Both the position numbers and the translations under genes were made by a program. Of a stretch of DNA of 64,000 nucleotides, positions 13,615 to 59,633 are shown piece by piece. The stretch's first letter is position 1. Every line of letters starts with the position of its first letter. The notes under the pieces were generated by a model. The model saw nothing but the letters and a program-made list of their open reading frames with translations. It made no database searches and was not told the DNA's origin. The stretch is taken from positions 1-64,000 of the IMG/VR virus record IMGVR_UViG_3300009514_000001. The stretch is one strand, 5' to 3'.

Positions 13615-14658
13615 ATGAGAAAGCCCTCTGTCGACAAATTCCAAGGATGCCTCATTGGGTGCGCTGTCGGAGATGCCGTCGGCGCTCCCGCGGAAACCTG
13701 GGGACTGCGAGAGTGTCAGACCTACGTCAAGACCAAGGTCGGACCCATGGCCTTTGAGAGGGTGTTCCGGACGTCCAGAAAGGGCGAGCGAGTCCCCTTC
13801 GGACAGTACACCGACGACACCCAGCTCACCCGAGAGCTGATCTCGTCCATCCTCGACCGCGGCGAGGTCGACCCTGAGCACTACGCCGATATCCTCGTGG
13901 ACCTGTTCGGTAACCGCAACCCGGTCGGTACCGGACGAGCCACTAGAGCGGCCGTCACCCGCCTCTATCAGGGAGTCCCCTGGGACGAGGCAGGAACGCC
14001 CTCGCCATCCGCGGGCAACGGCTCGGCCATGAGGGCCGCCCCCGTCGGCCTGCTCCACTGGAACACCAGGCCGAAGCGTATCAAGAACCTGGTCGAGGAC
14101 GCCGAGGCCCAGGGCATCATCACGCATGCCAACCCCGTGTGTACCGCGGGGGCCGTTGCCCTCGCCACTGCCGTCAAACAGGCCCTCTCGCCCGCCCCTC
14201 CGAACACGCTACGCTGGTGGAAGGACCTGGCGGAGGGGGTGTCCTGCGTGGACCACAACGCCTACGACGACGTCCCGATGGACGAACTTATCCTGAGCCT
14301 GTGGAAGCGCCGTGAGGCCAAACCCGAGGACATCAGGACCTGGCTGATGGACATCACCCCAGACTTCGGCACCAAGTGGCGGGGTATCAGCTCCTGGGTT
14401 GTCTCCAGTGTCCTCTGGTCTCTGTACGCATTCCTCCGGACCCCGGACGACTTCTGGATGACCATCCAGACGGCTATCTGGCCGGGAGGAGACGTCGATT
14501 CGACCGCGGCCATGGCAGGGGCCATCAGCGGCGCCTACAACGGCCTGGGAGCCATTCCCGAGGACGTGGCCAGGCAGGTCAACGACGACGGCTCCCAGGG
14601 CTATGAGGAGCTGTGTGAGATGGCCAGCAAACTCCATCAACGAACAGTAGGAGGCTAG
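13615..14658 (+). CDS. ADP-ribosylglycohydrolase (ARH/DraG family)
   Basis: AVGDAVG, YTDDTQ, GNGSAMRAAPVG and GGDVDSTAAMAGAISGA motifs. Confidence 0.92.
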   Translation: MRKPSVDKFQGCLIGCAVGDAVGAPAETWGLRECQTYVKTKVGPMAFERVFRTSRKGERVPFGQYTDDTQLTRELISSILDRGEVDPEHYADILVDLFGNRNPVGTGRATRAAVTRLYQGVPWDEAGTPSPSAGNGSAMRAAPVGLLHWNTRPKRIKNLVEDAEAQGIITHANPVCTAGAVALATAVKQALSPAPPNTLRWWKDLAEGVSCVDHNAYDDVPMDELILSLWKRREAKPEDIRTWLMDITPDFGTKWRGISSWVVSSVLWSLYAFLRTPDDFWMTIQTAIWPGGDVDSTAAMAGAISGAYNGLGAIPEDVARQVNDDGSQGYEELCEMASKLHQRTVGG

Positions 14659-14660
14659 CG

Positions 14661-15491
14661 ATGGGAGACATCTTCACCGACGCCAACAAGGGCTACTGGA
14701 GAGAGAAGAAAGCCCGGGCGAAAGCGGCTCGGCTCAAGGACGAAGCAGCCCAGAGGGAGGTAGAAGCCATGGGAGACGGACAATATCACGCTTGGAAGGA
14801 GCAAAGAGACAAGGAAGACAAGGAGAAGCTCCGCAAGAGCAAGCAGGTCACCGGTCACAGTGCCAAGAACATCATGCGGGTGATATCCTTGAGCGTTCCC
14901 CAAGAGGCCTGGGAAACAGTCGTCCAGGTCTTCCAGAACAATGGGATGCTTCTTCACGATACGAAGGTGCCAGAGCCCGACGGGGGGCCTCTGCTCGATG
15001 TCTGGATTCGACCGGATACGATTAGGACCCTCCCTCTCCCGGACCAGAAGGGGTTTTTCCTGGAACCCTCCAACCTTCGAACGTCGTACGACAGGGCCGA
15101 CGTGTTCATCCACGCGATGGTCCGACATACCTGTCCCGACGGCGGCACCAAGAAATGGACTCAGGACCACACTCTCGGCAGGACCGTGTGGGACAGCCAC
15201 CTCGGATTCCAGTGCCGCTGTGGCGTGTGGGTGGGCATCACCCAGGCCACGTTCCAGGCTCTCCCAAACTCCTGGGACAGCCTCCTGAGTGGACATAAGG
15301 AACGAGACCTCTTGGCCACCAGGACGGCATCCGACAAAGAGAACCTCCTCGGCGAGGTCGAAGAGATGGACGTAGGTGAGGACGTTCCCAAACTCACCCG
15401 AGAGGACCTCCAAGAGGCTCTAGGCAAGGGGAAGGTGTTTGTCCATACCGACCACGGCCTCCAGGCCGCCCCAGAGGACATTCTCAGCTAG
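14661..15491 (+). CDS. Hypothetical protein
   Basis: 276-aa ORF with GGAGG RBS. Confidence 0.65.
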   Translation: MGDIFTDANKGYWREKKARAKAARLKDEAAQREVEAMGDGQYHAWKEQRDKEDKEKLRKSKQVTGHSAKNIMRVISLSVPQEAWETVVQVFQNNGMLLHDTKVPEPDGGPLLDVWIRPDTIRTLPLPDQKGFFLEPSNLRTSYDRADVFIHAMVRHTCPDGGTKKWTQDHTLGRTVWDSHLGFQCRCGVWVGITQATFQALPNSWDSLLSGHKERDLLATRTASDKENLLGEVEEMDVGEDVPKLTREDLQEALGKGKVFVHTDHGLQAAPEDILS

Positions 15492-15492
15492 A

Positions 15493-15798
15493 ATGCGTAT
15501 CCCACACCGGTGCTCACGGTGTCAGGCGCGACATGCGTTCAAGTTCCACTGGCAGACGTACCGGAAGGTCATGAGGTGCGCCCAGTGTGGCTACGCCAAG
15601 TTCTACGTCGACAAGGCGAGGATGCGAAGAAACAACGGCAAACTGGCCTGTCTCTGTGACGCCTACCACTATCCTCACCGCTATCAGTCCGGTCAGTGTA
15701 TTCACGGCCCGAACCCGTATGGGTCTGTCTCGTTCGAGCCACCACCCCCGCCGTTCGACTACAGCGCGCCCGACGACGACGACGGGACGCCCTTCTAG
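15493..15798 (+). CDS. Small Cys/His-rich (Zn-binding) hypothetical protein
   Basis: CxxC, CxxC and CxC..H..C patterns. Confidence 0.55.
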   Translation: MRIPHRCSRCQARHAFKFHWQTYRKVMRCAQCGYAKFYVDKARMRRNNGKLACLCDAYHYPHRYQSGQCIHGPNPYGSVSFEPPPPPFDYSAPDDDDGTPF

Positions 15799-16028
15799 TC
15801 CCCGAACAGTTCCAGAATGCCAACGGGGCCTTCGTGGAGAGGCTCCCAGTTGGTCTCGAACTGCTCTTCGGACTCGACTCCGAACATGCCGACCGAACAC
15901 CCGGTGTCGTAATAGACGGTGCCGTCGATACGGTCGAGGACCTGACACTGATGAGCCGACGCAACTCGATGGCGGTACGTCGGCTCAAAGGGGTCGGCCT
16001 TCGTAAAGGTGTAGCCGTTCTTAGTCAA
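15795..16028 (-). CDS. Small hypothetical protein ending ILELFGD
   Basis: Follows ORF 16021-17170 on the same strand; the C-terminal motif recurs elsewhere. Confidence 0.4.
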   Translation of the reverse strand: MTKNGYTFTKADPFEPTYRHRVASAHQCQVLDRIDGTVYYDTGCSVGMFGVESEEQFETNWEPLHEGPVGILELFGD

Positions 16029-17170
16029 GGAAATCGCCCTTACGAGCCAGCCGCTCGGCTTCGCGGATGACAGTCGAGATGCTGGCCTCTCCCAGCTCCC
16101 GGGACCGCCTACCTAGACTCACCTCGTACTCTCCTCGGAAAGTGTCGTAGTGAACTCCGAGGTAGGTCCTCCCACCGAAGGCAGGGTCAGAGGCTTCGTT
16201 CCAGATAGAGATCCGGATAGAGTCGATACTCCGGTCGGCAGTGAGGTCGGAAGACAGGCCGTATTTTCGCTCGAAGTGATGAGCGATTTGTAGAAGAGCT
16301 TTCTTTGCCTTCGCTGGTGAGAGGGCCGCCCGGCGGTCAAGTCTCTTCGCGGCTTTCACAGCGAGGTAGGCGTCGTCCGAGGCGATACCGGAGTCCATCA
16401 GACTCTTGGCAACGTCTCTTTCCAAGAGACCGATGCCGAGCATCGAACGGGCCCTGTGAATCAGGCTTTCGTCGACCATTGCTTGAAGAGACCTCCCGGA
16501 AGACGCCGTCTCCCTGTCAGCAGCGACAACGGCGTCGAGGAGCTTGTTGCGGAGGGTCTCGTCCTGGACCGTCGAGGCGAACTTGATGGTGTCGGCTCGG
16601 AGGGCCTGATAGCCGTCGTTGCTTTCGGAGGCGACCATCTCCAGACCGCCACCCGCGGTCTCGTGCGCCGAGTCCCGGAGAGCGTCATTGACAGACCCGC
16701 CGCCGGTGTCGTCGACGTACTTGCGCAGCTTGCGAGAGAGGAAGTTAGCGAGTGATCTGAGTTCCTTGCGAGAGTCCTCGAACAGGTGGTCGAGGTCGCC
16801 GTCGAACATGGTCACTCCCTCTCCTCGGAGGGTCATGAACGCCAGGTAGTCGCCGTCGGCGTCCATGAAGGCGTCGGCCTGTTCGCCCAGGTCCTGGCCA
16901 GCCAGGTATCCCTTGAGAGGGTTCTGCTTGAACCAAGACTTGAGGGCCTTCTCCAGCTCCCTTTGGAACTTGTCGATGGCCTTCCCCACCTCTTTGGTGG
17001 CCTCGGCATCTCGGCCGTCCAGCCCCATCGACTCGGCCTCGCCCTGGACCAGCCAGTCCATCACGTCCGGGTCGTCGAGGGCGGCCATCTTCTCCAGGAT
17101 GGGCAGGATGTGCTCCTGGAGGTGAGGCTTGTCGGCGATGTAGCGAATGGTGGCGTCGCGAAGGCTCATG
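16021..17170 (-). CDS. Hypothetical protein, possibly virion-associated (LRDATIRYIADKPHLQEHILPIL motif)
   Basis: GAGGAG RBS; motif shared with ORF 56752-57705. Confidence 0.6.
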
Positions 17171-17287: not shown

Positions 17288-17644
17288 ATGGAGCTGAGGG
17301 AGTCCCCAATGGCCTGGAAAGTGGTTTACGATGGACGACGTGGGCAGAGTCTCCACCCGGTTGAGAAGCCGGCGCCCGAGTGCGTCTCGCCCCACTGTGA
17401 CTGCAAGACACAGTGGCCCAAGCCCTCTTGGGACAACCATCTGGGGTTTCGCTACGCCGATCACAGCAACCATTGGGAGGTCCGAGATGCCGCCCTAGCC
17501 CTGGACAACCGGGCTGAACGGGCGGTTCCATCCCTGTGGCTCGCCCACATGGAGGAGATCGGCCGCCCCGTGAGACAGGTCTCTTGGAGAGGGGCCCACG
17601 GCAAAATCCCGAAATTCTACAGAAGAAGAGGACAAGAGCAATGA
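17288..17644 (+). CDS. Hypothetical protein
   Basis: GAGG RBS; ATGA overlap with the ligase N-half. Confidence 0.55.
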   Translation: MELRESPMAWKVVYDGRRGQSLHPVEKPAPECVSPHCDCKTQWPKPSWDNHLGFRYADHSNHWEVRDAALALDNRAERAVPSLWLAHMEEIGRPVRQVSWRGAHGKIPKFYRRRGQEQ

Positions 17645-18756
17645 ACAAGAGCGCGCTCACCAGGAAGATTGAAGATGCCAGAAAGGCCTACTACGGACCT
17701 AACGCCCCTCTCATGACGGATGCCGAGTACGATGCTCTCGAAGACGAGCTTCGCCTCCTCGACCCCGAGCATTACCTGCTCATGACAACAGGGACTCCTC
17801 CTGGCGACAGCGGCTGGGAGAAGGTCTCCCACGGCATCCCGATGCGCTCACTCAACAAGGCCCAGGTCTTCGATGAGATGGGCACCTGGTTCAAGAGCCT
17901 GGGACAGGTCCCCTGCCCACCTCTGGAACCCTCTCTGGTATTGACCGAGAAGCTCGACGGGATCTCATGCTCCCTCCAGTACATCAAGGGCCGACTCGTC
18001 TCGGCCCTGACCCGAGGTGACGGTGCCGTGGGTGAGGATATCACCCGCAACGTCAGTCTGATGAAGGGCGTTCAACACCGGCTGCCGAAAGGACCCTATG
18101 AGAACTGGAGCGGCCACCTCCGAGGTGAGATCGTCTGTCGCCGGTCCGACTTCGAGAAGCACTTCAAGGGCTACTCGAATCCCCGGAACACGGCGAGCGG
18201 GACGGCCAAACGTGAGAGCGACCCGGAGCCCTGCAAACACCTGACGGTCATCGTCTACCAGATGGTTCCCGAGGGCGGCTACATGATTTCGAAGATGACG
18301 GAGCTGGAGACCATCCAGAGCCTCGGGTTCATCGCCCCCAACTACGTTGGCCTGAAGTTCGACCGCATCGAGTCCATCTACCGAGGGTACGTTGACGACC
18401 AACGGGAGCTGTTGGACTACGACATCGACGGCCTGGTCATCGAGGTCAACTCCCAGTCCTTCGCTGAGGACCTCGGCGAGCTGAACAAGAGACCCAAAGG
18501 TGCCGTCGCGTTCAAGTTCCCCCACGACTCCAAAGAGACTACCCTGGAGCGCGTCGAATGGCAGGTCGGCAACACCGGCCGCATCACGCCGGTGGCGGTG
18601 TTCAAGGCGGTCAACCTGGCCGGTGCCAACGTTACCCGGGCAAGTCTCCACAACGTGTCCTACGTCAAGTCACTCAATCTCCACGAGGGCGACAAGATTC
18701 TCGTCAGCCGACGAAATGACGTCATCCCGGCCGTAGAGTCCAACCTCTCAAGGTAA
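17641..18756 (+). CDS. ligA: NAD-dependent DNA ligase, N-terminal half (Ia + adenylation + OB domains)
   Basis: YY..D.EYD.L, EKLDG, RGDG..GEDIT, NPRN.ASG, DIDGLV, WQVG.TGRITPVA and RASLHN; stops right after VIPAV. Confidence 0.93.
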   Translation: MNKSALTRKIEDARKAYYGPNAPLMTDAEYDALEDELRLLDPEHYLLMTTGTPPGDSGWEKVSHGIPMRSLNKAQVFDEMGTWFKSLGQVPCPPLEPSLVLTEKLDGISCSLQYIKGRLVSALTRGDGAVGEDITRNVSLMKGVQHRLPKGPYENWSGHLRGEIVCRRSDFEKHFKGYSNPRNTASGTAKRESDPEPCKHLTVIVYQMVPEGGYMISKMTELETIQSLGFIAPNYVGLKFDRIESIYRGYVDDQRELLDYDIDGLVIEVNSQSFAEDLGELNKRPKGAVAFKFPHDSKETTLERVEWQVGNTGRITPVAVFKAVNLAGANVTRASLHNVSYVKSLNLHEGDKILVSRRNDVIPAVESNLSR

Positions 18757-19969: not shown

Positions 19970-21092
19970 CAAGACGTTCCTGACTGGTGTTCACGAGATT
20001 GACCGTGTGTTCGGTGGTCTACCAATCAACACGGTCTGGACCCACCTCGACATCGACTCGAAGAGGGGTGACAAGACCCTCGACAGATTCATGGCCGCCC
20101 TCCGCAAGCAAAATCTTCGCGCTATGTTCTTCGATGTCGTGCCGGAGGAGCGCCCTTCGGACTGGGACTTGGTTCTCGTCCGCTGCGACGAGGAGAGCTT
20201 CGTCGAACAACTTCGACGGGCCCAGCATCACAGCGTCTATGGGGGCGTCGGGACGATTCTCTCCGTCAACGTCCCCGAGCGGTTCCTCGACTTCGTCGAA
20301 CGGAAGGGGACCGTCGAACTGGCTCGCCTGTACCGAGGGGAGTTGGCTGAACGATGCGACCTGGTAACGGCCACCCTACCTCGGCCCTATGACGTCGGGA
20401 TTTGGATGAGCTGCCTCAAGTCCCGCCAACGGGGATTCGGCTCCTTCGAGTGGCCTCCTGTCGAGAGACTCCCCGACAAGCCGTCCCTATCTGAGGCGAT
20501 GAGTGTCATCGGCGACACCCTGGGCGACAACGCTCTCCTCGATGGTCTGTCCTGGGAACCTCGTGGGTCAGCATCGACGAGCTTCGGGACTACAACCGCA
20601 TCGACGAAAGTGATTGACGCCTTGGACATCGACGACCTGGTCCGTCGCCTTCCGGTAGGACAGAACGTCCGTCGCCTCGCTGTCCGCATCGTCCGCGAAG
20701 CGGGACAGCGTGGTGGCTCTGTGCTCGTCGACCTAGTGGCGAACCTGATCTCACGAGCCAATGAGGTCGACCTCTACGAAGAGGAACGCAACGAGGCCCT
20801 AGAGGACCTGGAGAGCCTCATCCTGGAGGTCAGCTTCGAGGGTCAGGACTTCGAAGAGTCCCTCAAATACTGGAAGTCTGTCGAACAACTCCGGAGACTG
20901 GAGAGCCTCATCCTGGAGGTCAGCTTCGAGGGTCAGGACTTCGAAGAGTCCCTCAAATACTGGAAGTCTGTCGAACAACTCCGGAGAAAAGCCATCGACC
21001 TCCTCATCGAGCACGGCGTCGACCGCGACGAGATGGACAGCGACCTTCTCAAGGGCATCAAACTACTGGCCGAGAGAGACGATGACGACTGA
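19962..21092 (+). CDS. Hypothetical protein with a degenerate RecA/DnaB-like N-terminus and a 90-bp internal duplication
   Basis: TGVHEIDRVFGGL; 20808-20897 equals 20898-20987. Confidence 0.55.
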   Translation: MSNKTFLTGVHEIDRVFGGLPINTVWTHLDIDSKRGDKTLDRFMAALRKQNLRAMFFDVVPEERPSDWDLVLVRCDEESFVEQLRRAQHHSVYGGVGTILSVNVPERFLDFVERKGTVELARLYRGELAERCDLVTATLPRPYDVGIWMSCLKSRQRGFGSFEWPPVERLPDKPSLSEAMSVIGDTLGDNALLDGLSWEPRGSASTSFGTTTASTKVIDALDIDDLVRRLPVGQNVRRLAVRIVREAGQRGGSVLVDLVANLISRANEVDLYEEERNEALEDLESLILEVSFEGQDFEESLKYWKSVEQLRRLESLILEVSFEGQDFEESLKYWKSVEQLRRKAIDLLIEHGVDRDEMDSDLLKGIKLLAERDDDD

Positions 21093-24412: not shown

Positions 24413-25252
24413 ATGAACATTCTCGACATGTTTGGTGACGAGGAAGACCAGGCCCAGCTGACCAGCCAGCCAATCGCCATCCCCACCCACTGCCCGGAGT
24501 GCGAGTTCCCGCTCCGGATGGACGGGGAGTACCTGGTGTGCAAGAACGGCAAGGCCTGTCCCGCTCAGGTGACGGGGGCAATGAAAGCCTGGATTTCCAA
24601 GCTGGGCATCCTTCACTTCGGCACCTCTCTCATCGAGGCCATCGTCGAATCCGGCTTGGCCAAGACTGTTCCCGACCTCTACCGACTCAAGGCGCCCCAG
24701 GTGGCGGCACTGACGATGTCCGGCCGGCGCGTCGGCGACAGCACGGCCCACACTGCCCTCTCCAACCTACACGCCAAGAAGGACCTGGCTCTGGCTACTA
24801 TGGTCGGTTCCCTGGGCATCCCGATGGTTGCCCGAAGCATGTGCAAGACCATCGCCCAGGGAGGTTTCGATACCATCGACCTGATGATGGTGGCCAAGGT
24901 CGACGACGTGGCCGCCATCCCGGGTGTCGGCCAGAGCAAGGCCGAGAGCTTTGTTGCCGGCATCGCCGAGCGCAAGGAGATCATCGAAGACCTCCTGGAG
25001 GTGGGAGTCACCATCAAGGCGGCGGCCGACGGACCCCTCAGGGGCAAGCTCTTCTGCATGACCGGGTTCCGCTCGAAGGAGATGGAAGAGGCCATCGAAG
25101 ACGCTGGCGGCATCATCAAGTCGGGCGTCAGCCGCAAGCTCGATTTTCTGGTTGCGGACGACCCGGATTCGACCAGCGGCAAGCCCAAGAAGGCCCGCAG
25201 GTACGGCGTACCCATCATCGACAAGGCGACACTCTGGGGGATGGTATCGTGA
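24413..25252 (+). CDS. ligA: NAD-dependent DNA ligase, C-terminal half (Zn finger + HhH + BRCT)
   Basis: PTHCPEC...C.N..ACPAQ, LGI..V, IPGVG..KA, LRGKLFCMTG, SGVSRKLDFLV and KARRYGVPII; own GAGGAG RBS. Confidence 0.9.
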   Translation: MNILDMFGDEEDQAQLTSQPIAIPTHCPECEFPLRMDGEYLVCKNGKACPAQVTGAMKAWISKLGILHFGTSLIEAIVESGLAKTVPDLYRLKAPQVAALTMSGRRVGDSTAHTALSNLHAKKDLALATMVGSLGIPMVARSMCKTIAQGGFDTIDLMMVAKVDDVAAIPGVGQSKAESFVAGIAERKEIIEDLLEVGVTIKAAADGPLRGKLFCMTGFRSKEMEEAIEDAGGIIKSGVSRKLDFLVADDPDSTSGKPKKARRYGVPIIDKATLWGMVS

Positions 25253-29432: not shown

Positions 29433-29734
29433 GGTACACAAACTGTACCCGCTAACTTAACAATTTCTGTCTAAATCTCACTTTTTCTCGGTAGTGTAGT
29501 TATACCAACCCCCTAAGTAGGTGAAGGTCATGATGAGGAAAGCCATGATTGTCCGAGTTACCGCAACCGAGTTTGAAACTGACCAGGGGAGGGTGTTCCC
29601 GCACCCTGTCCCCTTTGAGGAAGATCAGGTGCCTTCCGTCGAGGACTTCCAGAAATGGTACGACCATTGGTTTGCCCTTTTCTGCGATGAGTTCTCGGGA
29701 GAGAGAATCGCCGTGCTGCCAAAGAGAGGAGAGG

Positions 29735-30361
29735 ATGCCGAAGAAGGATAAACTTCTGTCTCTCGGCAAAGCCTCCACTTTGCTAGGTCTTCACCCAAAC
29801 ACACTCCGCAACTGGAGTAATGAGGGGAAGATCAAGTCCGTCCGAACGCCTGGGGGTCACCGTAAGTTCCCCCTCTCGGAGGTCCAGAAGCATATGGGGC
29901 TGGAGTCCTCTGAGGATCAACCAGGAAACCGCACCGCCATCTACTGCCGTGTCAGCAGTCACGACCAGAAGAAAAAAGGTGATCTAGAACGCCAGGCGGG
30001 CCGGGTGAGTTCTTACTGCGTCCAGAAAAGCTACCAGGTGGTTGATGTCCTCCAAGATGTCGGGTCTGGTATGTCTGAGAATCGACCTCGTTTGCGTAAG
30101 CTATTCAAGTTGGTGGACGACCACCAAATTGACCGGGTGGTCGTCGAGCACAAGGACCGCCTGACCCGGTTCGGTTTCGGTCTCTTGCAAGCCTACTTCG
30201 GGAGTCACGGAGTGGCCATCGAGTGGACAGAGGAGACTCTGGGGAAATCCTACGAGGAAGAGTTGGTGGAGGACATCTTGTCCCTCATGGCGTCCTTCTC
30301 CGCCCGCATCTACGGCAAGCGTTCCGCTGAAAACAGGAAGAAAGCCCAGGATAATAAATGA
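29735..30361 (+). CDS. tnpA: IS607 serine-recombinase transposase
   Basis: MerR-like HTH (LGLHPNTLRNW..RTPGGHR), then IYCRVSS.DQK..DLERQ and EHKDRLTRFGF. Confidence 0.93.
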   Translation: MPKKDKLLSLGKASTLLGLHPNTLRNWSNEGKIKSVRTPGGHRKFPLSEVQKHMGLESSEDQPGNRTAIYCRVSSHDQKKKGDLERQAGRVSSYCVQKSYQVVDVLQDVGSGMSENRPRLRKLFKLVDDHQIDRVVVEHKDRLTRFGFGLLQAYFGSHGVAIEWTEETLGKSYEEELVEDILSLMASFSARIYGKRSAENRKKAQDNK

Positions 30362-31080
30362 AAATGAGAGTCTGTATCCCATATTTCGGCGCGAAGTTTA
30401 TGAGAGCACCTCACTACCCGGCCCCTCAACACGACACCATTGTGGAGCCTTTTTGTGGGGGTGCGGGTTATTCTCTGAGACATCACATGAAAAAGGTGAT
30501 TCTATTTGACAAGAGTGAGTACGTCGTTGGTGCCTGGAGGTTCCTTCTCAGATCTCCAAAAAAAGAAATACTCAATTTGCCCCTTCTGGAACCTGGTGAG
30601 GACGTATCCGATCTGAGCATCTGCCAAGAGGCAAAGTGGTTGATCGGGTTTTGGATCAATCAGGGATCTGCGGTTCCGAAGAGGACTATGGGGGGCAGGC
30701 GGTCAAATAGAAGATTCGGAACCTGGGGAGATGCTGCCCGTCAGCGACTTGCTGACCAAGTTGGATCCCTTCGTCACTGGGAAATAAATCAGGGGAGTTA
30801 CACAGAAGTGCCTGATATTAAAGCGACTTGGTTTATAGACCCTCCATACCAAATCCAGGGTAAACATTACCCCCACCGCATCGGGGACTATACGGGTTTG
30901 GCTTTATGGTGTCGGAGCCGAAGAGGTCAGGTGATGGTGTGCGAAAGTGAAGGCGCAGACTGGCTTCCTTTCTCTCCTGTCACAACTGTCGTCGGTGCCA
31001 CGCACCGAAAGACAACCGAAGTTCTCTGGACAAACAAAAACGAGGCATTGGTTCCTCCTATCCACAAGGTGGATAAGTAG
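30358..31080 (+). CDS. Dam/D12-class N6-adenine DNA methyltransferase
   Basis: YFGAK, IVEPFCGGAGY (motif I) and FIDPPY (motif IV). Confidence 0.85.
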   Translation: MKMRVCIPYFGAKFMRAPHYPAPQHDTIVEPFCGGAGYSLRHHMKKVILFDKSEYVVGAWRFLLRSPKKEILNLPLLEPGEDVSDLSICQEAKWLIGFWINQGSAVPKRTMGGRRSNRRFGTWGDAARQRLADQVGSLRHWEINQGSYTEVPDIKATWFIDPPYQIQGKHYPHRIGDYTGLALWCRSRRGQVMVCESEGADWLPFSPVTTVVGATHRKTTEVLWTNKNEALVPPIHKVDK

Positions 31081-31082
31081 TT

Positions 31083-32346
31083 ATGTCTGTCGTCCAAAGG
31101 GCATACAAGGTTGAGATCGACCCCAATAACAAGCAACGCACCGCTCTGCGGTGCCGCTCTGCGGTGCCACGCTGGTTGTGCCAGGTGGGCATTCAATTGG
31201 GGACTCTCCCGTAAAATCGAGTCCTACAAGGAGACGAGGAAGTCCCCGAACAACATCGAGCTTCATCGGGAGTTGAATAAGCTCAAGAGGGCCGACCCAG
31301 AGAACGGTGGAATTCCCTGGATGTACAACGTCTCGAAGTGCGCACCACAGGAAGCTCTCCGAGACCTGGATAAAGCGTTCAAGAGCTTCTTCAGACGCTG
31401 TAAGAAGGGGGCCAAGAGAAAAGGTTTCCCTCGGTTTAAATCTCGTCGGAAGAGTCCCCTCAAATTTCGCCTCACAGGGGCTATCAGGACTTCCGAAGAC
31501 GGCAAACAGATCAAACTCCCCAACTTGGGGTGGATCCGGCTCAAAGAGACCGGGTACCTCCCAGGACCCGAGAGGAAAGAAGTGAAAATCCAGTCGGCAT
31601 CACTCTCTGAGCGAGCCGGAAGGTGGTTCGTTTCTCTGACCTGTAAAGTAGAGGTTCCTGATACCGCACCACGACCGAGAACCAAAGTCGTTGGGGTGGA
31701 TGTTGGAATCAAATCTCTTGCGGTGACGAGCGACGGACAGGTGTTCGAGAATCCGAAAGCCCTGGCTCGTGTGCAACGCCGCTTGCGGCGAGCACAAAAG
31801 GCACTGGCTAGGAAACAGAAGGGCAGTAGGAATCGGGAGAAGGCACGTAGGAGAGTTGCGAAGCTCTACTATCGGGTGTCGTGCATCCGACAAGATGCTC
31901 TACACAAAGCCACCAGTGAGATCGTGAAGGGCGCAGATGTAGTCTGCATCGAGTCCCTGAACGTCTCTGGGATGTTGAAGAACAGGAAACTCTCTCGTGC
32001 TCTTTCTGACGCATCCCTGTCGGAGTTCTTGCGTCAGTTGGCCTACAAGGCTGAGTGGGCCGGTGTTGAGGTGGTAGAGGCCGACAGGTTCTACCCATCG
32101 AGCAAGACCTGTTCTGGGTGTGGTCACGTCAAACAGGACTTGTCTTTGTCTGATCGTACCTACTCTTGTGGGGAGTGTGGTTTGGTGATGGACCGAGACC
32201 TGAATGCCGCAATCAATTTGAAAAACTTGGCCCCGAGTTCCGGGGTGTCAGCCTGTGGAGAGAATGTAAGACCCCAGTCGGAGCTTGCTCGGGTTGGGGC
32301 TATCTCTGCGAAACAGGAACCGAACACAGGAGCTACACCATGTTAG
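31083..32346 (+). pseudogene. tnpB: TnpB RNA-guided nuclease, frameshifted by a 13-bp duplication at 31141-31166
   Basis: GVDVG, CIESL and DRDLNAA RuvC residues and the Zn ribbon are intact; removing one CCGCTCTGCGGTG restores MSVVQRAYKVEIDPNNKQRTALRCHAGCARWAFNW. Confidence 0.88.
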
Positions 32347-35011: not shown

Positions 35012-35226
35012 CTGGAGTGCTCGGTCACTCTAACCGCCCAGTCCAGGAACTCTTGGACTGGGCGGTTCCGTTTCATGCGGTTACACCTGCTGCAACAAGG
35101 AACACAGTTGTCCACCTCATAGCCTCGGTCGTTATCGACCCGGTCGATGCCTGAGGCACGCAAGACGGGGGTTATCTCCTGTGCCCGATCTGTCGTGCCG
35201 AGCGCCCCGCGCCCTCCTGATTGCAC
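35008..35226 (-). pseudogene. HNH endonuclease fragment
   Basis: GIDRVDNDRGYEVDNCVPCCSRCNRMK. Confidence 0.7.
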
Positions 35227-35229
35227 TTG

Positions 35230-35747: not shown

Positions 35748-35838
35748 TGGGAAGCGCACCTGAAGCACGGATTTTCTACGGCTACTTCCTCGACGACCTC
35801 GACATCGACGGCTACGCTCGAGAACTTAGGAGAACCCC

Positions 35839-37886: not shown

Positions 37887-37936
37887 CCAGCCCTCCTCAA
37901 GTCTCTACAGAGTACCAGGCGATAGAGAGACAAGTG

Positions 37937-37965
37937 GGTCCACTTTCGGACCCGGTGTCGTATGG
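37937..37965 (+). promoter_or_regulatory. Putative phage promoter GGTCC-N18-GTATGG in front of the cas operon
   Basis: Exact spacing, 23 nt before the GTG start at 37988. Confidence 0.6.
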
Positions 37966-37987
37966 AGGGCTACGAGGTGAGGAAAGA

Positions 37988-39985: not shown

Positions 39986-40079
39986 CGAGAGTCAGAGAAA
40001 GCCCTTGCCTTTCCGACCACGGGAACACCCGGGGAACTATTAACAACACAATGTGGTTGAGGCGAAAATTGAGGCGAAA

Positions 40080-40754
40080 ATGAACCTGAGAAAACTACTC
40101 AGCGACCCTGTGAGGGTCAAGGTCACAGGCAGAAGAGGCCTCTTTTCGCGCCATGACTTTCCTACGGAGAGGATTTCATACCCTATCATGACCCCCAGTG
40201 CCGCCCGGGGGCTGCTCAGAAGGATATACGGAAAACCTCAGCATTTCTGGGTGATACAGGCGGTTCAGGTGCTGAATCCAATTCGGTTCGAGAACATCAC
40301 CTACAACGAGGTGAGACTCCCGAAGAGACCTGTTCCTGTGAATGTTAGCAATACATCTCAGGTCCGTATTCAGAGGTCTGCCCAGGTTCTCATAGAGCCC
40401 TCCTACATCATCGAGGCACGGGTTCTGGTGCATCCCTATGCGTACAGGAACGGAGGCATGCCCACCAAGCACACGGAACAGCTCAAGAGACGTCTGAAGA
40501 GGGGCCAGTTCTTCCTCCAACCCGATCTCGGCAAGAGCGAGTTTTTCGCTGATTGTTCTTTGCCGGACGGCAGCGAGAGTCCCCTTCCAGTGAGCCAGGA
40601 CCTCGGCCGTATCCCTCTCTTCGTCGATCAGAGCGAAGGGCGCTCGCACTACTTCCAGGCCTTCATGAAGCGGGGTGTGGTGCAGGTGCCGCAGAAGCAG
40701 CTTCTGGACGTCCTGGAGCCGAAACTCCTCGACCAAGACCCTTGGAGAACGTGA
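40080..40754 (+). CDS. cas5: Type I-C Cas5 (Cas5d, crRNA-processing)
   Basis: ERISYPIMTPSAARG.L..IYGKP..W.I..V.VLNPIRF..I..NEV; TKH..Q..RR..RGQ.F.QP.LG..EF. Confidence 0.92.
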   Translation: MNLRKLLSDPVRVKVTGRRGLFSRHDFPTERISYPIMTPSAARGLLRRIYGKPQHFWVIQAVQVLNPIRFENITYNEVRLPKRPVPVNVSNTSQVRIQRSAQVLIEPSYIIEARVLVHPYAYRNGGMPTKHTEQLKRRLKRGQFFLQPDLGKSEFFADCSLPDGSESPLPVSQDLGRIPLFVDQSEGRSHYFQAFMKRGVVQVPQKQLLDVLEPKLLDQDPWRT

Positions 40755-42655
40755 TGTACAATCTCATCCGAGAACTCACCAAAGTACGGGTGCCCTCGAC
40801 GTTCCCGGGCCCTGGGTATCTCCTCAGAACTGCCAACGTGTTCTGTCACCTAGACAGATCGGGATTCTCTCACTGGGAGGTCAAGAAAGAGGGTGAGCTT
40901 TACATGCTCCCCGACTCTGGACGTACAGGGACGGGTACAAAGGTCGGCCTGTGGGGTGACCAGGTGAGGGTCTACACCGGGAACAAGGAGACCAAGAAGG
41001 CCCGGGCCAAGAGAGAGGCCGCGAACAAGGCGAAGGGGAGAGACAACTCCAACGACTTGGCGGTTGCAATGGCCAAAGCTGTGAGCGAGGCCCACAATCG
41101 CATCAAGGGCCGCGCCGGAGAGGACACCAGGCTGAGTCTCGTCTACACATTTCTCACGGACGAGAGTCAGCGTCAGCGGGCTTACGATGCCCTTCCGGAT
41201 GACGTGAACCCGAACAGTCCTGTCGTCCTTGTTGTCGAGGGGAGGACGATGGTCCGTCCCCAGGAAGGTCCCTGGGCATCTCCGAACATCGACCTCTACG
41301 AGGAAGAGGGCAAACGCATTGCCTGGGTAGGCAATCTCAAGACCGTCGAGGGGGTGTGTAGCGTCACAGGCGAAAAGGACCTCATCCCCGACATCCACCC
41401 TGGGTCCGTGAAGATTGGTGACTCCAGAGCCCAGCTACTTTCCGGAAACATCCCCCAACACTTCCCCAATCCCAAAGGCAAGCTGTGGAGCACTGGCATC
41501 GGCCTGGAGGCTGCCCAGCAGTACACGACCGCCCTTGACTACCTGACGACGGACAAGAACCACCACCTGACGGCCCTCCACACCACGACCAAGAACCCCT
41601 CCTCCAGCGACTTCCAGAAGATAGTCTGGTGGGGCCGGGACGAGGACGCCTCCCTTCCTATCTACCAGAGCATTATCCGCCCCTCTGCGGAAGTCCGCAC
41701 GGCTATCGAGGAAGCCCTTGAGGGGAGGGGAGGTCCGGTCAACCTCGAACACCCCTTCAACACACTCGTCCTAGGTACCCACGTCAGACGCCTGGTGGTG
41801 CTCAGCATGTCGAGCGATACCCTCCTGGGTGTCTACCAGAGTGCCAGTCGATGGCTGAGAATGACCGAGACTCTCAGCGTTGATGAAAGGGGCGCCCTTG
41901 CCCGGAAAAACCACTCTCTCAAGGCCCTGTCGAGGGCCCTTCTGCCCCGCTCAAAGGAGGGTGAGTGGTTCGGTAAGTGCTCTCCCTACACGACGCAGGA
42001 CATCCTGAGGTCCATGCTCTTTCGGGAGCCCCTCACCAAGAGGCTCATCCACGGCCTGATGACTCGTCTCGAACGTGACCAACAGCTAACCACCGCCCGC
42101 ACAGCCCTCTTGCAGGTCTACCTACACCAACGAGGAATCATGGCTGACAAGACCCAAGCCCGAACCCCCATCGACCCGGAACTGGGAGGGTACGTCGGAT
42201 ACAATCTCGGACGTCTCCTCCAAGAGGCGACGGCCATCCAAAAGGCGGCAATCCGAGTCAATCGGGACTTGAGTTCCACCCTCTCATCCTACGCCAAGAA
42301 CCACCCCCGACGGCTGTACGACAAAACCACTCAGAAGGCGGACAATCACTTGACCTCTCTCAGGACCAAAGGGGACTACGGACTGGCCTCAATGTTCGAG
42401 AAGCGCCTGGGGGCCATCATCGGACGCATCTCTATGGTGCCGAAACAACTTCCCGAGGAGCAACTCGCACTGTTTCGCAAGGGACTGCGGGATCAGTATC
42501 TGGCCTCCCAGGCCGCCAACAAAAGACGATCTCAACTTAACAACGAGGACATCGCCAAGGACGAACTCGCATACCAGAAAGCGCAGGTCGACCTGACTCT
42601 AGGTCTCATTGACCCGGAGGACTGCCCTGCACCACCCACCACCGACAAGGAGTGA
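40754..42655 (+). CDS. cas8c: Type I-C Cas8c large subunit
   Basis: CSVTGEK...HP, AAQQYTTALDYL and C-terminal GYNLGRL..Q..A; TGATG coupling to cas5. Confidence 0.82.
   Translation: MYNLIRELTKVRVPSTFPGPGYLLRTANVFCHLDRSGFSHWEVKKEGELYMLPDSGRTGTGTKVGLWGDQVRVYTGNKETKKARAKREAANKAKGRDNSNDLAVAMAKAVSEAHNRIKGRAGEDTRLSLVYTFLTDESQRQRAYDALPDDVNPNSPVVLVVEGRTMVRPQEGPWASPNIDLYEEEGKRIAWVGNLKTVEGVCSVTGEKDLIPDIHPGSVKIGDSRAQLLSGNIPQHFPNPKGKLWSTGIGLEAAQQYTTALDYLTTDKNHHLTALHTTTKNPSSSDFQKIVWWGRDEDASLPIYQSIIRPSAEVRTAIEEALEGRGGPVNLEHPFNTLVLGTHVRRLVVLSMSSDTLLGVYQSASRWLRMTETLSVDERGALARKNHSLKALSRALLPRSKEGEWFGKCSPYTTQDILRSMLFREPLTKRLIHGLMTRLERDQQLTTARTALLQVYLHQRGIMADKTQARTPIDPELGGYVGYNLGRLLQEATAIQKAAIRVNRDLSSTLSSYAKNHPRRLYDKTTQKADNHLTSLRTKGDYGLASMFEKRLGAIIGRISMVPKQLPEEQLALFRKGLRDQYLASQAANKRRSQLNNEDIAKDELAYQKAQVDLTLGLIDPEDCPAPPTTDKE
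42140..42655 (+). CDS. cas11: Cas11c small subunit from an internal in-frame start in cas8c
   Basis: GAGG-AATC-ATG in frame, just before the Y.LGRL C-terminal domain. Confidence 0.6.
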   Translation: MADKTQARTPIDPELGGYVGYNLGRLLQEATAIQKAAIRVNRDLSSTLSSYAKNHPRRLYDKTTQKADNHLTSLRTKGDYGLASMFEKRLGAIIGRISMVPKQLPEEQLALFRKGLRDQYLASQAANKRRSQLNNEDIAKDELAYQKAQVDLTLGLIDPEDCPAPPTTDKE

Positions 42656-42659
42656 AAGA

Positions 42660-43613
42660 ATGGACGTCAAGTGTATCAACCCAAAGACCCGCCACGATTT
42701 GCTAATCACCTTCAGCGTCACCCGAGGCAACCCCAACGGAGATCCGGATGCCGGAGGAGCGCCCCGAGAAACCCAGGATGGCTATGGCATCGTCACCGGT
42801 GAGAGCATCAAGCGCTTGGTACGGGATGCCGCGGAAGAGGTCTTCGAACAGAAGATTTACATCCGGTCCGGACCGCCCCTAGAGGAGGCTCTGTTGAAGG
42901 CCGTCGAGCGAGCCTACAACGGAGACTCCTCCGAAGCTCCCCGTGACAAGAAAGGCAACCTCCTGGTGGCCCAGGTACCAAAGGACAAAATCCAGGCCAT
43001 CCTCGACGAACTGAGATCGTACTTCGACAACCGCATGTTCGGAGCCGTTTTCGCCAGTCAGAAAGTCCCTGTCGGACGATTCCGAGGACCCGTAGCTATC
43101 GGAGATGCCCGGTCCTTCGATGAGATCGTAGTCCGAGAAAATCGCCTCACTCGGGTCGTCTCCGCCAAGTCCGATGAGGGCAAGGACCGAACCGGCCAGG
43201 GCACCTTCGCGGAGCGCTACGCCGTCGACTTCGGCTTCTACGAAAGCTTCGGCAGCTTCAGCCCCCACGGCTCTGGCAAGCACGTCTCCGAGGAGGACCT
43301 CAAGGTGCTCTTCCAGTCTCTCGTCACGGGGTTCCAAGAAAGCGCCTCCGCCCGTCGTGGGGGCTCCTACCAGGTTCACCGCATCTACGTGTTCACGCAC
43401 GACAACGCCCTGGGTAACGCCTCCCAGCACGATCTCCGCAAAGTCGTCAAGGTGACCAAGCGGAAAGACGTGGATAGTCCCCTCTCCCTCGACGACTACC
43501 TCGTCGAAGTGAACCGAGGTGCCATCCCCAAAGGAGTTCACCTGAGCATCATCGACAACAGCAACGTCCTGGACCCGCAGGCCTGGTACGTCGACAGCTC
43601 CCGTCCTCGATAG
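42660..43613 (+). CDS. cas7: Type I-C Cas7 (Csd2)
   Basis: GNPNGDPDAGG.PR, G.VT.ESIKR.VRD, FDNRMFGAVF, RGPV and HDNALGNA. Confidence 0.95.
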   Translation: MDVKCINPKTRHDLLITFSVTRGNPNGDPDAGGAPRETQDGYGIVTGESIKRLVRDAAEEVFEQKIYIRSGPPLEEALLKAVERAYNGDSSEAPRDKKGNLLVAQVPKDKIQAILDELRSYFDNRMFGAVFASQKVPVGRFRGPVAIGDARSFDEIVVRENRLTRVVSAKSDEGKDRTGQGTFAERYAVDFGFYESFGSFSPHGSGKHVSEEDLKVLFQSLVTGFQESASARRGGSYQVHRIYVFTHDNALGNASQHDLRKVVKVTKRKDVDSPLSLDDYLVEVNRGAIPKGVHLSIIDNSNVLDPQAWYVDSSRPR

Positions 43614-43789
43614 TACCCGTTCGAACACCCCAGTGATGAGGAGACCCCTAGGGGTGCTCGAACGATAATGAAATCAATAGGTTGGATGCACTTTTGAGAG
43701 CCTCCCATCTTGTTCTTTGATAAGTGAATTAGGGGTGCTCGAAAACAGTACTCCAACTACCTAAGAACACTAGCTTTTGGGCTAGTGCG
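43614..43789 (+). promoter_or_regulatory. CRISPR leader
   Basis: AT-richer region with CGTTCGAACACCCC/GGGGTGCTCGAACG inverted repeat and a second AGGGGTGCTCGAA. Confidence 0.7.
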
Positions 43790-45473
43790 GTCGTCTTCTC
43801 GAAAGAGGAGACGGGAGATTTCAACGTGAGAAAGCTGAGGAGGTTCTGGAAGCATGGAGCGTCGTCTTCTCGAAAGAGGAGACGGGAGATTTCAACGAGG
43901 TGGGCGTAGACTCCGGGGGACTCGCCTTCAGTCGTCTTCTCGAAAGAGGAGACGGGAGATTTCAACGAGTTCGATGGGGACCGGCTTAAAGGAATCCTGA
44001 GCAGGTCGTCTTCTCGAAAGAGGAGACGGGAGATTTCAACGCCGAGAAGTACCCGGTGTAGTCGTAGCCATGGAACAGTCGTCTTCTCGAAAGAGGAGAC
44101 GGGAGATTTCAACGAGTGTGTAGTGGGCTGCCCCGCTACGGATTACGGGTCGTCTTCTCGAAAGAGGAGACGGGAGATTTCAACGATGATGCCTGCGGTG
44201 ATGTAGGGGCCGTCTTTCCGGGTCGTCTTCTCGAAAGAGGAGACGGGAGATTTCAACCTAGGATAGGGAAACGGGTTCAGCCGAAGACGCACGTCGTCTT
44301 CTCGAAAGAGGAGACGGGAGATTTCAACGTTGAAGAGAAGACCAGGAGAGACAGAGAGGCCACGTCGTCTTCTCGAAAGAGGAGACGGGAGATTTCAACA
44401 ACGTCGACACCAGTCTCTTCTCGCCCTTCTTGAGAGGTCGTCTTCTCGAAAGAGGAGACGGGAGATTTCAACTGATTCTGTCGGACACGACTGTCCTCGA
44501 CGCACTGAGTCGTCTTCTCGAAAGAGGAGACGGGAGATTTCAACGTCTTCAGGAGAGCTGGAGCCGACCCCACCCGACCCCACCTGAGCCCGTCGTCTTC
44601 TCGAAAGAGGAGACGGGAGATTTCAACATGGTCAGGGTCTCGACGGGGAGGTGATACGAGGGCGGTCGTCTTCTCGAAAGAGGAGACGGGAGATTTCAAC
44701 CCGAAGAGATCGTCGGAGGCGAATCCGCCACCCACGAGTCGTCTTCTCGAAAGAGGAAGATTTCAACTATCCGAGGTTAGAACAGGACAGTGAAGGTGTC
44801 GCCTGAGAGCTGAACTCGTGTCGTCTTCTCGAAAGAGGAGACGGGAGATTTCAACAGGGCCTGGCTACCCCCAGGAGACTTCTGGGCGGGCGTCGTCTTC
44901 TCGAAAGAGGAGACGGGAGATTTCAACTCACTCTCGTGGTCCACATCCAACCTCGGGGCTCCTGTCGTCTTCTCGAAAGAGGAGACGGGAGATTTCAACG
45001 ATGAAGAGCCGAAGCCGCGCCAGCGCCCGAGAAGCGCGTCGTCTTCTCGAAAGAGGAGACGGGAGATTTCAACGGAGGGACAGCGTGTTTCTTCTTCGGC
45101 TTGGCTTCCTGTCGTCTTCTCGAAAGAGGAGACGGGAGATTTCAACCGGAGCAGATGCTACGCAGGGCGGAGACTGCCCGCGGTCGTCTTCTCGAAAGAG
45201 GAGACGGGAGATTTCAACGGACTACGAGCGCCGCTATCCTGGCACCACGCACCCCGTCGTCTTCTCGAAAGAGGAGACGGGAGATTTCAACAGGTGCGGT
45301 CGTCTTCTCGAAAGAGGAGACGGGAGATTTCAACAAAGACAGGGACACGGTCGTTCACACCTGGTGTCGTCTTCTCGAAAGAGGAGACGGGAGATTTCAA
45401 CGGCAATGTCGCCCGCTGTTAGCCCCCAGCGCAGCCAGTCGTCTTCTCGAAAGAGGAGACGGGAGATCCGGGG
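43790..45473 (+). CRISPR. Type I-C array: 24 repeats GTCGTCTTCTCGAAAGAGGAGACGGGAGATTTCAAC (36 bp), 23 spacers, mostly 34-38 bp
   Basis: Counted by hand; 9-bp stem with GAAA loop and a G-U pair supports the + strand; the last repeat (45438) is degenerate. Confidence 0.97.
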
Positions 45474-58154: not shown

Positions 58155-58182
58155 GTCCAGTTGACTCCTCGCGGTCGTATAT
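58154..58182 (+). promoter_or_regulatory. Putative phage promoter GGTCC-N18-GTATAT overlapping the IS right end
   Basis: Exact spacing; the first G is the last base of the IS end. Confidence 0.6.
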
Positions 58183-58217
58183 AGGTATAAGACCTATTCC
58201 GTCGCAAGGAGAAGACG

Positions 58218-58958: not shown

Positions 58959-58959
58959 G

Positions 58960-58988
58960 TACGACCCCGCATGAGCGGGGATGTTCCC
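58960..58988 (+). repeat. Solitary type I-E-like CRISPR repeat unit
   Basis: TACGA-CCCCGC-ATGA-GCGGGG-ATGTTCCC has the 5+6+4+6+8 layout of I-E repeats. Confidence 0.55.
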
Positions 58989-58999
58989 AAACGGGAACA

Positions 59000-59089
59000 G
59001 GTCATTGACCGCTATTGACCTCCTCCGCGAGCACGGAGATTCCCGGTCATTGACCGCTATTGACCTCCTCCGCGAGCACGGAGATTCCC
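59000..59089 (+). repeat. Perfect 45-bp tandem duplication
   Basis: 59000-59044 equals 59045-59089. Confidence 0.9.
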
Positions 59090-59099
59090 AAAGGAGCAC

Positions 59100-59633
59100 A
59101 TGACAGACACCATTCTTTTCCAAAATCGCTGGGTCAAGGTCATCGACCGTGACGGCTACACCATGGTCCACGGGGCCGGGAATGCCGTCGCGGTTCTCCC
59201 CTTTCGAGGGGCGGTCGGCCAAGCCACAACCGCTGACGTGGAGTTCCTGGCTCGCATCGAGCCCTGTCCTCCCCACGGACCGAAGCCCCACCTCTGTGGC
59301 ATTACGGGGGGCATCGAGGGCCGGGAGAAGCCGGTCGACGCTGCGGTGAGGGAGACCTTCGAGGAGTCTGGGTTCCGGGTCACCAGGGAACAACTGGTTC
59401 GCCTGGGCATGGTATGGCCGAGCAAGATGTCGACCACCATCATGCACCTGTTCGCCGTCGATGTGTCCAGCGTCCCCTGGGAGACTCCCCCGGGGGACGG
59501 GACCGTCTACGAGGCCCAGTCGATGACTGTGTGGCTCCCTTACGAGAAGTCCGCCCTGGTCCCAGACGCAGTCTACTGCTCGATGATGCTACGCCTGGGA
59601 CGGTTCTTCCGTGAGGGCCTCTGGGGCGGGTGA
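59100..59633 (+). CDS. Nudix hydrolase (ADP-ribose pyrophosphatase-like)
   Basis: Nudix box GGIEGREKPVDAAVRETFEESGF; N-terminal AVAVLP. Confidence 0.88.
   Translation: MTDTILFQNRWVKVIDRDGYTMVHGAGNAVAVLPFRGAVGQATTADVEFLARIEPCPPHGPKPHLCGITGGIEGREKPVDAAVRETFEESGFRVTREQLVRLGMVWPSKMSTTIMHLFAVDVSSVPWETPPGDGTVYEAQSMTVWLPYEKSALVPDAVYCSMMLRLGRFFREGLWGG

Follow-up and report, generated by a model that had tools for sequence, protein, structure and literature searches.

Bacterial PARPs with a WGR domain (e.g., those of H. aurantiacus and C. difficile) make poly(ADP-ribose) in reactions with activated DNA (PMC5966428; PMC4245714), and the PARPs of Deltaproteobacteria have already been placed in published trees. 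For phages, surveys have recorded PARPs in Aeromonas phage Aeh1, Cellulophaga phage phi4:1, and a few jumbo phages, and ARH3-like genes have been noted in some double-stranded DNA viruses (PMC4245714; PMC7824862), while ~5% of jumbo phages are estimated to carry a gene of the ADP-ribosylglycohydrolase (ARH) family (Iyer et al., PMC9503650). PARPs of phages and bacteria and viral ARH3-like genes are already known as isolated genes (PMC4245714; PMC7824862; PMC9503650), and in the surveys the PARPs turn up sporadically, one gene at a time; the role of PARP in bacteria and phages is the question addressed here. We analyzed a window of 64 kb, i.e., the first 64,000 nucleotides of the 222,005-bp IMG/VR virus record IMGVR_UViG_3300009514_000001, which possesses direct terminal repeats. 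It contains a PARP gene, a second gene that is very probably coupled to it (hereafter the partner), and an ARH gene (Table 1). We propose, with a probability of roughly 45%, that a clade of huge phages carries a DNA-break-responsive ADP-ribosylation module and that part of it lies in the window; this module comprises the PARP and its partner and is reset by the ARH. This figure is not higher because every activity in the scheme is predicted.

The PARP of this phage shares with these bacterial PARPs a WGR domain, an ADP-ribosyltransferase (ART) domain with an H-Y-E triad and, judged by its predicted fold, a helical domain. However, in those bacteria the PARP is paired with PARG (DUF2263) and MacroD, whereas this genome has neither a PARG nor a macrodomain; a search of the whole 222-kb genome revealed no Macro, PARG, NAPRTase/NAMPT, or NMNAT. 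The two also differ in that the Pfam PARP_reg domain is undetected in the phage protein. We found no mention of a dedicated partner gene of the winged helix-turn-helix (wHTH)/AbrB-like type in the papers on PARPs that were read. The phage PARPs in the surveys are likewise PARP catalytic domains in large phages but are listed singly, whereas here we are dealing with a gene pair that is shared with the Nannocystaceae and statistically tied to an ARH; neither the pair nor this statistical tie was found described in the papers that were read.

The PARP of the Huge Phage

The predicted PARP (genetic code table 11 was used throughout) consists of an N-terminal WGR domain, a disordered Lys-rich linker, a helical regulatory-type domain, and an ART domain with the H-Y-E triad. 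The linker carries a perfect duplication of 24 nt (two copies), which doubles eight residues. The Pfam profile for the PARP catalytic domain (PF00644) matches at 44.7 bits (cut-off 26.7). The H, Y, and E align to the triad of PARP1/PARP2 and do not vary among 25 aligned family members (HGTR, GxY, NDEH), which also conserve the W-G-R motif. The AlphaFold model has a predicted local distance difference test score (pLDDT) of 74 and a predicted template modelling score (pTM) of 0.67. Foldseek ranks human PARP1 WGR-CAT at a DNA break (7s6h, 4dqy) and human PARP2 (6x0l) highest, with E ~1e-18, ~580 aligned columns, and a TM by target of 0.61-0.64, and the catalytic fragment of the model matches PARP1 CAT with a TM by target of ~0.7. 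A helical domain is predicted at residues ~218-333, where the model aligns with fragments comprising a helical and an ART domain. The earlier note, which was made from the sequence alone, had labeled this gene a PARP-like transferase, and the Pfam match, the triad, and the full-length match of the predicted fold bear this out: judged by its model, the protein is a genuine PARP1/2/3-type WGR-helical-ART enzyme, the activity of which is predicted.

The family is large, with ~50% identity over the full length and a mean column identity of 58%; phage and bacterial copies are ~50% identical, and within the Nannocystaceae identities are 65-77%. In reference genomes of prokaryotes the family was found only in Myxococcota, mainly in Nannocystaceae (Enhygromyxa, Plesiocystis, Pseudenhygromyxa). 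A near relative of this genome was not found among deposited phages, the PARP gene had no megablast match in the phage collection, and the nearest INPHARED record is only 34% identical. Related loci in IMG/VR were not found with the single PARP protein as the query, and were retrieved by an alignment-based scan; in the closest relative (L007/L008) the PARP is 59% identical to that of the window. In the PARP tree a single well-supported clade holds the Nannocystaceae sequences, alongside several deep lineages of phages, and the window groups with L007 and L010. Since the backbone of this tree is unresolved, a direction of transfer between phages and Nannocystaceae cannot be claimed.

As modeled, the WGR and helical domains suggest that activation depends on nucleic acids. 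This argues against a function in host take-over, in which the PARP would modify host proteins such as RNA polymerase, like Alt, ModA, and ModB of T4. Such a role has been proposed for jumbo-phage PARPs (PMC7824862), and the catalytic residues of the PARP are intact, but the same gene pair is kept in free-living Nannocystaceae, which have no host to take over, and no link to virion or early-gene modules was seen in the loci. We regard it as very improbable.

Two further observations were made on members of this family. Four Nannocystaceae genomes contain an extra paralog that matches the first ~243 PARP positions (WGR and linker) and does not possess the catalytic domain (Table 1). A second, weak PARP-domain protein of 371 amino acids (L007:20353-21468) is encoded ~9 kb downstream of the main PARP in L007.

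A Partner Gene Coupled to the PARP

When all phage genes were searched against the myxobacterial PARP loci, exactly one match was found besides the PARP itself, i.e., the partner gene. The earlier note had proposed an ADP-ribose cycle for this region, and its gene set was incomplete in this respect, as it missed this gene, which accompanies the PARP at almost all loci examined. In 13 of the 14 myxobacterial loci, as well as in L009, a homolog comes directly after the PARP, and in nearly all phage loci it follows the PARP at 0.02-5.8 kb on the same strand. The gap is 10.5 kb in the window, similar to the 10.3 kb in G008. No flanking gene is conserved around the bacterial pairs. In the Enhygromyxa order, both genes occur in the same 10 out of 73 genomes, where they are always adjacent, and the other 63 possess neither (10/10 vs. 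0/63; Fisher p=1.6e-12, uncorrected for phylogeny). Each of the 12 IMG/VR records with a PARP contains exactly one copy of the partner, and two PARP-less relatives contain none. We also compiled a background set of 49 related huge-phage records, which were selected via an unrelated marker protein of 1,942 amino acids. Here the partner was present in 9 of 9 PARP-positive vs. 2 of 40 PARP-negative records (p=2.7e-8). In one of the two exceptions (G105) the partner is located 1 kb from the end of the contig, where a PARP would fall off. Look-ups that started from three distant homologs of the partner encountered a PARP just upstream in each case. It is, therefore, very likely that the PARP and the partner are coupled as a gene pair.

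For the partner protein, Pfam, NCBIfam, and the source annotation are all blank. Its structural model (pLDDT 83, pTM 0.77) suggests an N-terminal winged helix (residues ~19-115), a variable, disordered linker (~135-193), and a C-terminal domain (~195-296). Structural matches of the N-terminal domain are Fur, TFE, and the cullin WH-B, with modest Z values of 5-6. For the C-terminal domain, a single barrel like that of MraZ is predicted, built from two hairpin-helix units in tandem. Foldseek retrieved MraZ for this domain with modest scores (probability 0.44-0.47, TM by target 0.42), and in the protein atlas it matches clusters of MazE, SpoVT, and SymE with a TM by row of 0.56-0.63. Foldseek gave nothing at E <= 0.001 for the partner against the PDB, nor did a feature search in the protein atlas yield a usable match. 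The C-terminal domain resembles, in its predicted fold, a single-chain version of the swapped-hairpin domain of AbrB, MazE, and MraZ. The partner differs from these proteins in having no Pfam match, in its fusion to an N-terminal winged helix, and in being encoded with a PARP. Both predicted domains are types of nucleic-acid-binding modules, and we consider the partner a putative DNA-binding protein. A prediction of the complex of PARP and partner yielded ipSAE values of 0.14 and 0.00, compared to a mark of 0.32, and bears neither way on binding.

The predicted fold also brings to mind a quite different function. The PARP and its partner could be a toxin-antitoxin-like or superinfection-exclusion cassette, in which DNA ends trigger NAD+ depletion or ADP-ribosylation of a target and the partner is an antitoxin or repressor of the AbrB/MazE type. 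The pair is a self-contained cassette of two genes with unrelated flanks in bacteria, folds like those of MazE, AbrB, and SymE are typical of antitoxins, and in the window the pair is located among mobile and defense elements (the IS607-like element, TnpB, and CRISPR-Cas). In Pseudenhygromyxa it adjoins DUF2169 and VgrG genes, but this VgrG neighborhood is not conserved. Moreover, the sequence conservation given above is unusually high for a conflict system, the single well-supported clade of the Nannocystaceae fits vertical descent, and the phage pair sits in a replication/repair neighborhood with a ligase. We hold this explanation to be unlikely. The DUF2169/VgrG (type VI secretion system) neighbors themselves were considered as parts of the system and ruled out, as the flanks are not conserved across the bacterial loci.

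In three contigs of Myxococcota metagenome-assembled genomes (L032, L034, and L044) the open reading frame after the PARP (L032:7486-7992, L034:11656-12048, and L044:11797-12192) matches only the winged-helix domain of the partner (~130 amino acids). The PARPs of these contigs branch apart from the Nannocystaceae clade.

The ARH and Its Association with the PARP Module

The earlier note had also assigned the ARH gene to the ARH/DraG family. This is fully supported by a match to PF03747 of 209.9 bits that covers the full profile (positions 1-287). Among solved structures, MJ1187, ARH3 (aligned over residues 5-342), and DraG come closest, with similar scores for all three. The metal ligands, as aligned to ARH3, are kept (E27, T66-D67-D68 in TDDT, and D293/D295/S296 in GGDxDS) and are invariant in the orthologs. 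The models of the specificity groups were not reached (83.8 vs. 337 bits for the DraG equivalog, 77.3 vs. 490 bits for Tri1) and, from its sequence, the ARH cannot be placed in the DraG, Tri1, or ARH3 specificity.

Among the IMG/VR records that carry the PARP, 8 out of 12 contain an ARH-family gene; of the five with a completeness of 90% or more, four do so. In the background set, 8 out of 11 records positive for PARP or partner possess an ARH vs. only 2 out of 38 negative ones (Fisher p=1.4e-5), and this enrichment persists when one near-identical lineage is collapsed (7/8 vs. 2/38) or when only records that are at least 60% complete are counted (6/6 vs. 2/9; p=0.006). The three positive records that do not have an ARH are fragments (11-27%) of a lineage in which the ARH lies >230 kb from the PARP. 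The distance between both genes is 2.7 kb in the closest relative and 4 kb in LR756511. Some PARP-carrying relatives possess orthologs of the window ARH at 38-47% identity, and others contain ARHs that are related at 25-32%. The ARH subfamilies thus differ among the PARP lineages, which suggests repeated recruitment. The ARH co-occurs with the PARP module far above chance, yet the link is not obligate. The writer-eraser half of the ADP-ribose cycle that the earlier note had suggested is, therefore, backed by the comparative enrichment, and so is the expectation that the ARH would co-occur with the PARP in related phages.

Based on these results, the module, of which the PARP and its partner would be the obligate core, may work as follows. 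Recognition of nicks or DNA ends by the WGR domain would relieve a block by the helical domain on the H-Y-E ART domain. The partner would most likely be the main target of the PARP or a co-factor that tethers it to DNA, and ADP-ribosylation would then switch DNA binding by the partner. The ARH3-like hydrolase, a frequent accessory in phages, would most likely strip the marks and reset the switch; we rate the chances that it acts as the eraser in phages as even. The module is set among genes for replication and repair (a split NAD-dependent ligase, a DHH phosphoesterase, and a TopIB-like gene), and in this genome it seems to have been pulled apart by the IS607-like element and the CRISPR-Cas I-C block.

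This arrangement could, in outline only, be analogous to human PARP1/2-HPF1/histone-ARH3, where a break-sensing PARP is combined with an accessory protein or target on DNA and an eraser of the ARH3 family instead of PARG, although the partner, with its predicted winged helix and AbrB-like barrel, is unlike HPF1 or histones. A bolder version holds that the PARP and the wHTH/AbrB-like partner form an obligate two-component ADP-ribosylation switch in huge phages and Nannocystaceae, with the partner as DNA-bound specificity factor or main substrate, analogous in function to HPF1/histones, and an ARH3-like eraser, and that this is the prokaryotic and viral counterpart of PARP1/2-HPF1-ARH3 signaling of DNA damage in eukaryotes; we regard this as speculative and somewhat unlikely. 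The coupled partner and the statistically linked, putative eraser of the ARH3 type turn the question of PARP function into a defined system of three proteins that can be approached in vitro and in myxobacteria. If the partner is indeed the target or co-factor of the PARP, this would show how break-dependent ADP-ribosylation signaling works outside the eukaryotes and could have implications for how the eukaryotic system arose.

Several observations weigh against the proposed module. The WGR domain (PF05406) is marginal, with 22.2 bits vs. a cut-off of 22, and the helical domain is read from the fold alone. The enrichment statistics ignore phylogeny and many of the records are fragments. The distance between ARH and PARP ranges from 2.7 to 263 kb across the relatives, G003 (93% complete) possesses PARP and partner without an ARH, G018 and G118 contain an ARH without a PARP, and no ARH ortholog is linked to the myxobacterial PARP loci. 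These last points would be accounted for if the ARH were independent of the PARP, acting in counter-defense by stripping ADP-ribose that host ARTs attach to phage or host molecules, with the co-occurrence simply reflecting shared ancestry, hosts, and large genomes. In agreement with this, the genes that flank the ARH in G001/2, G005, G007, and G009 encode NrtR-type Nudix regulators, Nudix fusions, or an HD phosphatase, and because this pattern resembles the ARG-centred conflict systems with NrtR-like Nudix regulators and phosphatases, which have no ART (Iyer, Burroughs, and Aravind, 2022; PMC9503650), the ARH may have a role of its own. However, those systems were defined in bacteria without a coupled ART, whereas the genomes of these relatives also encode a PARP, and the neighbors of the ARH in the window are without such domains. 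The strong enrichment inside one phage clade, the tight linkage in L007/L008 and LR756511, and the recruitment of non-orthologous ARHs in separate PARP-bearing lineages speak against independence, which we consider doubtful rather than improbable. We still favor a PARP-partner module with the ARH as its reset enzyme.

With respect to the surroundings of the ARH, the orthologous gene in G001/2, G005, and G007 adjoins a protein that combines an NrtR-type Nudix with a winged helix (L023, G001:96000-108000; L024; L025). In G001 and G009 (L026) it is also flanked by a fusion of a nucleoside-2-deoxyribosyltransferase-like domain with a Nudix, and in G009 by an HD phosphatase as well. The neighbors of the ARH in the window (13052-13618 and 14661-15491) have no match in Pfam, NCBIfam, or PHROG. 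The idea that they are divergent NrtR-type regulators is unsupported, with neither a domain match nor a tblastn match to the relatives.

The Nudix Hydrolase and the NADAR Remnant

The cycle suggested in the earlier note further included a Nudix hydrolase and a decayed NADAR, i.e., a PARP writer, an ARH eraser, a Nudix for clean-up and, formerly, a NADAR would together make up one phage ADP-ribosylation cycle. All four families are indeed present. The gene is a Nudix hydrolase as stated, with a match to PF00293 (Table 1) and a canonical Nudix box (GX5EX7REUXEEXGU) at residues 69-91. An N-terminal extension like that of ADP-sugar/NDP-sugar pyrophosphatases, structural neighbors of the same ADP-sugar type, and a weak match to YffH/AdpP (TIGR00052) are hints of a substrate of this kind. 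However, the latter match (18.8 bits) is far below the cut-off of 79.55, and the assignment to ADP-ribose is without support. The closest solved structures are MutT, DIPP1, and NudJ, all with E >1e-3, its look-alikes are phage Nudix clusters, and it belongs to a common phage Nudix family of ~185 amino acids.

The distribution of the gene also speaks against a place in such a cycle. An ortholog of the window Nudix occurs in only 1 of the 12 PARP-carrying records (G006, 40% identity), and there it lies far from both genes, with the PARP ~96 kb and the ARH 163 kb away, so that the expected co-occurrence, seen for the ARH, does not extend to this gene. Nudix genes of various kinds do recur near the ARH or PARP in relatives, but those that adjoin the ARH or the partner are not orthologous to the window Nudix, the ones next to the ARH being NrtR-like regulators of another type. 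Nudix genes are, moreover, common in such phages, as every near-complete huge phage that was checked carries 1-4 of them. The Nudix next to the partner in L118 was examined as a candidate ortholog and rejected, since only the Nudix box matches. We conclude that the Nudix lies outside the PARP/ARH module.

The NADAR is a dead remnant, which also lies outside the PARP module. The earlier note had placed a decayed NADAR at 5446-5827, beyond the range of 13615-59633 for which it made its claim. The remnant is real, but the frame given contains three stops. In the correct frame, the stretch at 5714-5824 (37 codons) corresponds to the C-terminal 31-37 residues of intact NADARs of related phages, with 65-77% identity. 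PF08719 is matched at positions 126-163 only, with 20.3 bits (cut-off 35.1). Traces of the N-terminus are left at 5546-5653, stops interrupt this frame at 5543, 5669, and 5699, the catalytic core has been lost, and a tandem duplication of 39 nt is present inside the remnant. On present evidence, neither the Nudix nor the NADAR should be included in such a cycle. A four-enzyme cycle, in which the ARH is indeed enriched with the PARP, would also leave out the only near-invariable companion of the PARP, i.e., the partner, and is in our view quite improbable. The clean-up part of the earlier idea is thus without support.

As a side observation, the open reading frame beside the Nudix (59897-60943) matches the MmeI target-recognition domain with 54.1 bits.

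Genomic Neighborhood of the Module

The window has a G+C content of ~60% and most of its genes are located on the + strand. The whole genome contains one copy each of the PARP, the ARH, and the Nudix. As the earlier note had already remarked, these genes are dispersed, with 18.6 kb between ARH and PARP and 24.1 kb between PARP and Nudix. In L007/L008 the order is ARH - LigA(N) - LigA(C) ... PARP - partner - DHH - amidase, within ~12 kb, and in L007 the partner begins ~0.8 kb after the PARP. The window keeps the gene order of L007 but is stretched by insertions (Table 1). The two pieces of the NAD-dependent ligase are 5.6 kb apart in the window and adjacent in L007, whereas L119 possesses an unsplit LigA of 656 amino acids; homologs of the C-terminal piece were found in L007, L010, L016, and L020. 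LigA is located 2-8 kb from the PARP in L007, G006, G009, G010, and L119, and in LR756511 the PARP has an ATP-dependent ligase as its immediate neighbor.

Table 1. Coordinates of the genes and other features discussed in the text; positions refer to the 64-kb window unless a record is named.
Feature	Position	Strand	Basis or remark
NADAR pseudogene remnant	5546-5827	+	PF08719 partial match, relatives
ARH (ARH/DraG family), 347 amino acids, intact	13615-14658	+	PF03747
NAD-dependent DNA ligase, N-terminal piece	17536-18756	+	Pfam DNA_ligase_aden 142.5 bits, OB 86.1 bits
NAD-dependent DNA ligase, C-terminal piece (HhH/BRCT)	24413-25252	+	phrog_3869 155.6 bits, positions 386-648
IS607-like element, upstream of PARP	29549-32346		low-GC patch, 0.53 vs. 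~0.60
Serine-recombinase transposase of IS607-like element	29549-30361		phrog_6620
TnpB of IS607-like element	31111-32346		OrfB_IS605 and Cas12f-like TNB
PARP1/2/3-type ART, 581 amino acids	33266-35011	+	Pfam, triad alignment, AlphaFold model
Block of ~10.5 kb between PARP and partner, this genome only	35181-45298	+	Pfam, NCBIfam, PHROG, synteny with L007
HAD_SAK_2 phosphatase ("Swiss-army-knife" RNA-repair HAD)	35181-35747		64.9 bits; directly downstream of PARP
Gene without assigned family in block	35839-36423
TopIB-like gene	36424-37389		phrog_6247 (annotated DNA topoisomerase) 228.8 bits; no Pfam match
Open reading frame	37386-37886	-
Cas3	37934-39985		type I-C cassette
Cas5	40053-40754		type I-C cassette
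Cas8c/Csd1	40553-42655		type I-C cassette
Cas7	42609-43613		type I-C cassette
Two CRISPR arrays	43790-44546, 44815-45298		36-nt repeat, ~35-37-nt spacers
PARP partner, 296 amino acids	45528-46418	+	whole-genome gene search against myxobacterial PARP loci
Nudix hydrolase, 177 amino acids, intact	59100-59633	+	PF00293 31.5 bits
Tandem duplications	8065-8196, 20808-20987, 33805-33853, 59000-59089, 60604-60748, 5578-5655
WGR + linker paralogs in Nannocystaceae	G016:C1:4277443-4278087, G072:C196, G074:C620, G077:C43; L045

The HAD_SAK_2 and TopIB-like genes are not conserved beside the PARP in relatives. Relative to L007, a phage-borne type I-C CRISPR-Cas interference module (37934-45298) sits between the PARP and the partner; Cas1, Cas2, and Cas4 were not recognized near this cassette. 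Its 36-nt CRISPR repeat was not found, at up to three mismatches, in the 73 genomes of the Enhygromyxa order. In the loci of relatives we further observed an AAA protein containing an intein/LAGLIDADG near the ligase (L007:1-2578) and, as genes for the supply of nucleotides, a PRPP synthetase directly after the PARP (L119:7503-8450) and a fusion of OMP decarboxylase and phosphoribosyltransferase together with an IMP dehydrogenase beside the PARP module (L010:18450-21088).

Tandem duplications of 24-90 nt in two copies are unusually numerous in the window; five are perfect and one (5578-5655) is 97% identical. The sites include the PARP linker, the NADAR remnant, and a spot just upstream of the Nudix, and either replication slippage or an assembly artifact may have caused them. 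Finally, the marker protein of 1,942 amino acids, which was used to select the background set, is encoded at positions 99139-104967 of the genome on the - strand (L056) and has no PHROG match. Homologs with 30-54% identity are conserved in at least 58 IMG/VR records, which are up to 536 kb long, and the protein marks a large clade of huge phages that includes this genome.

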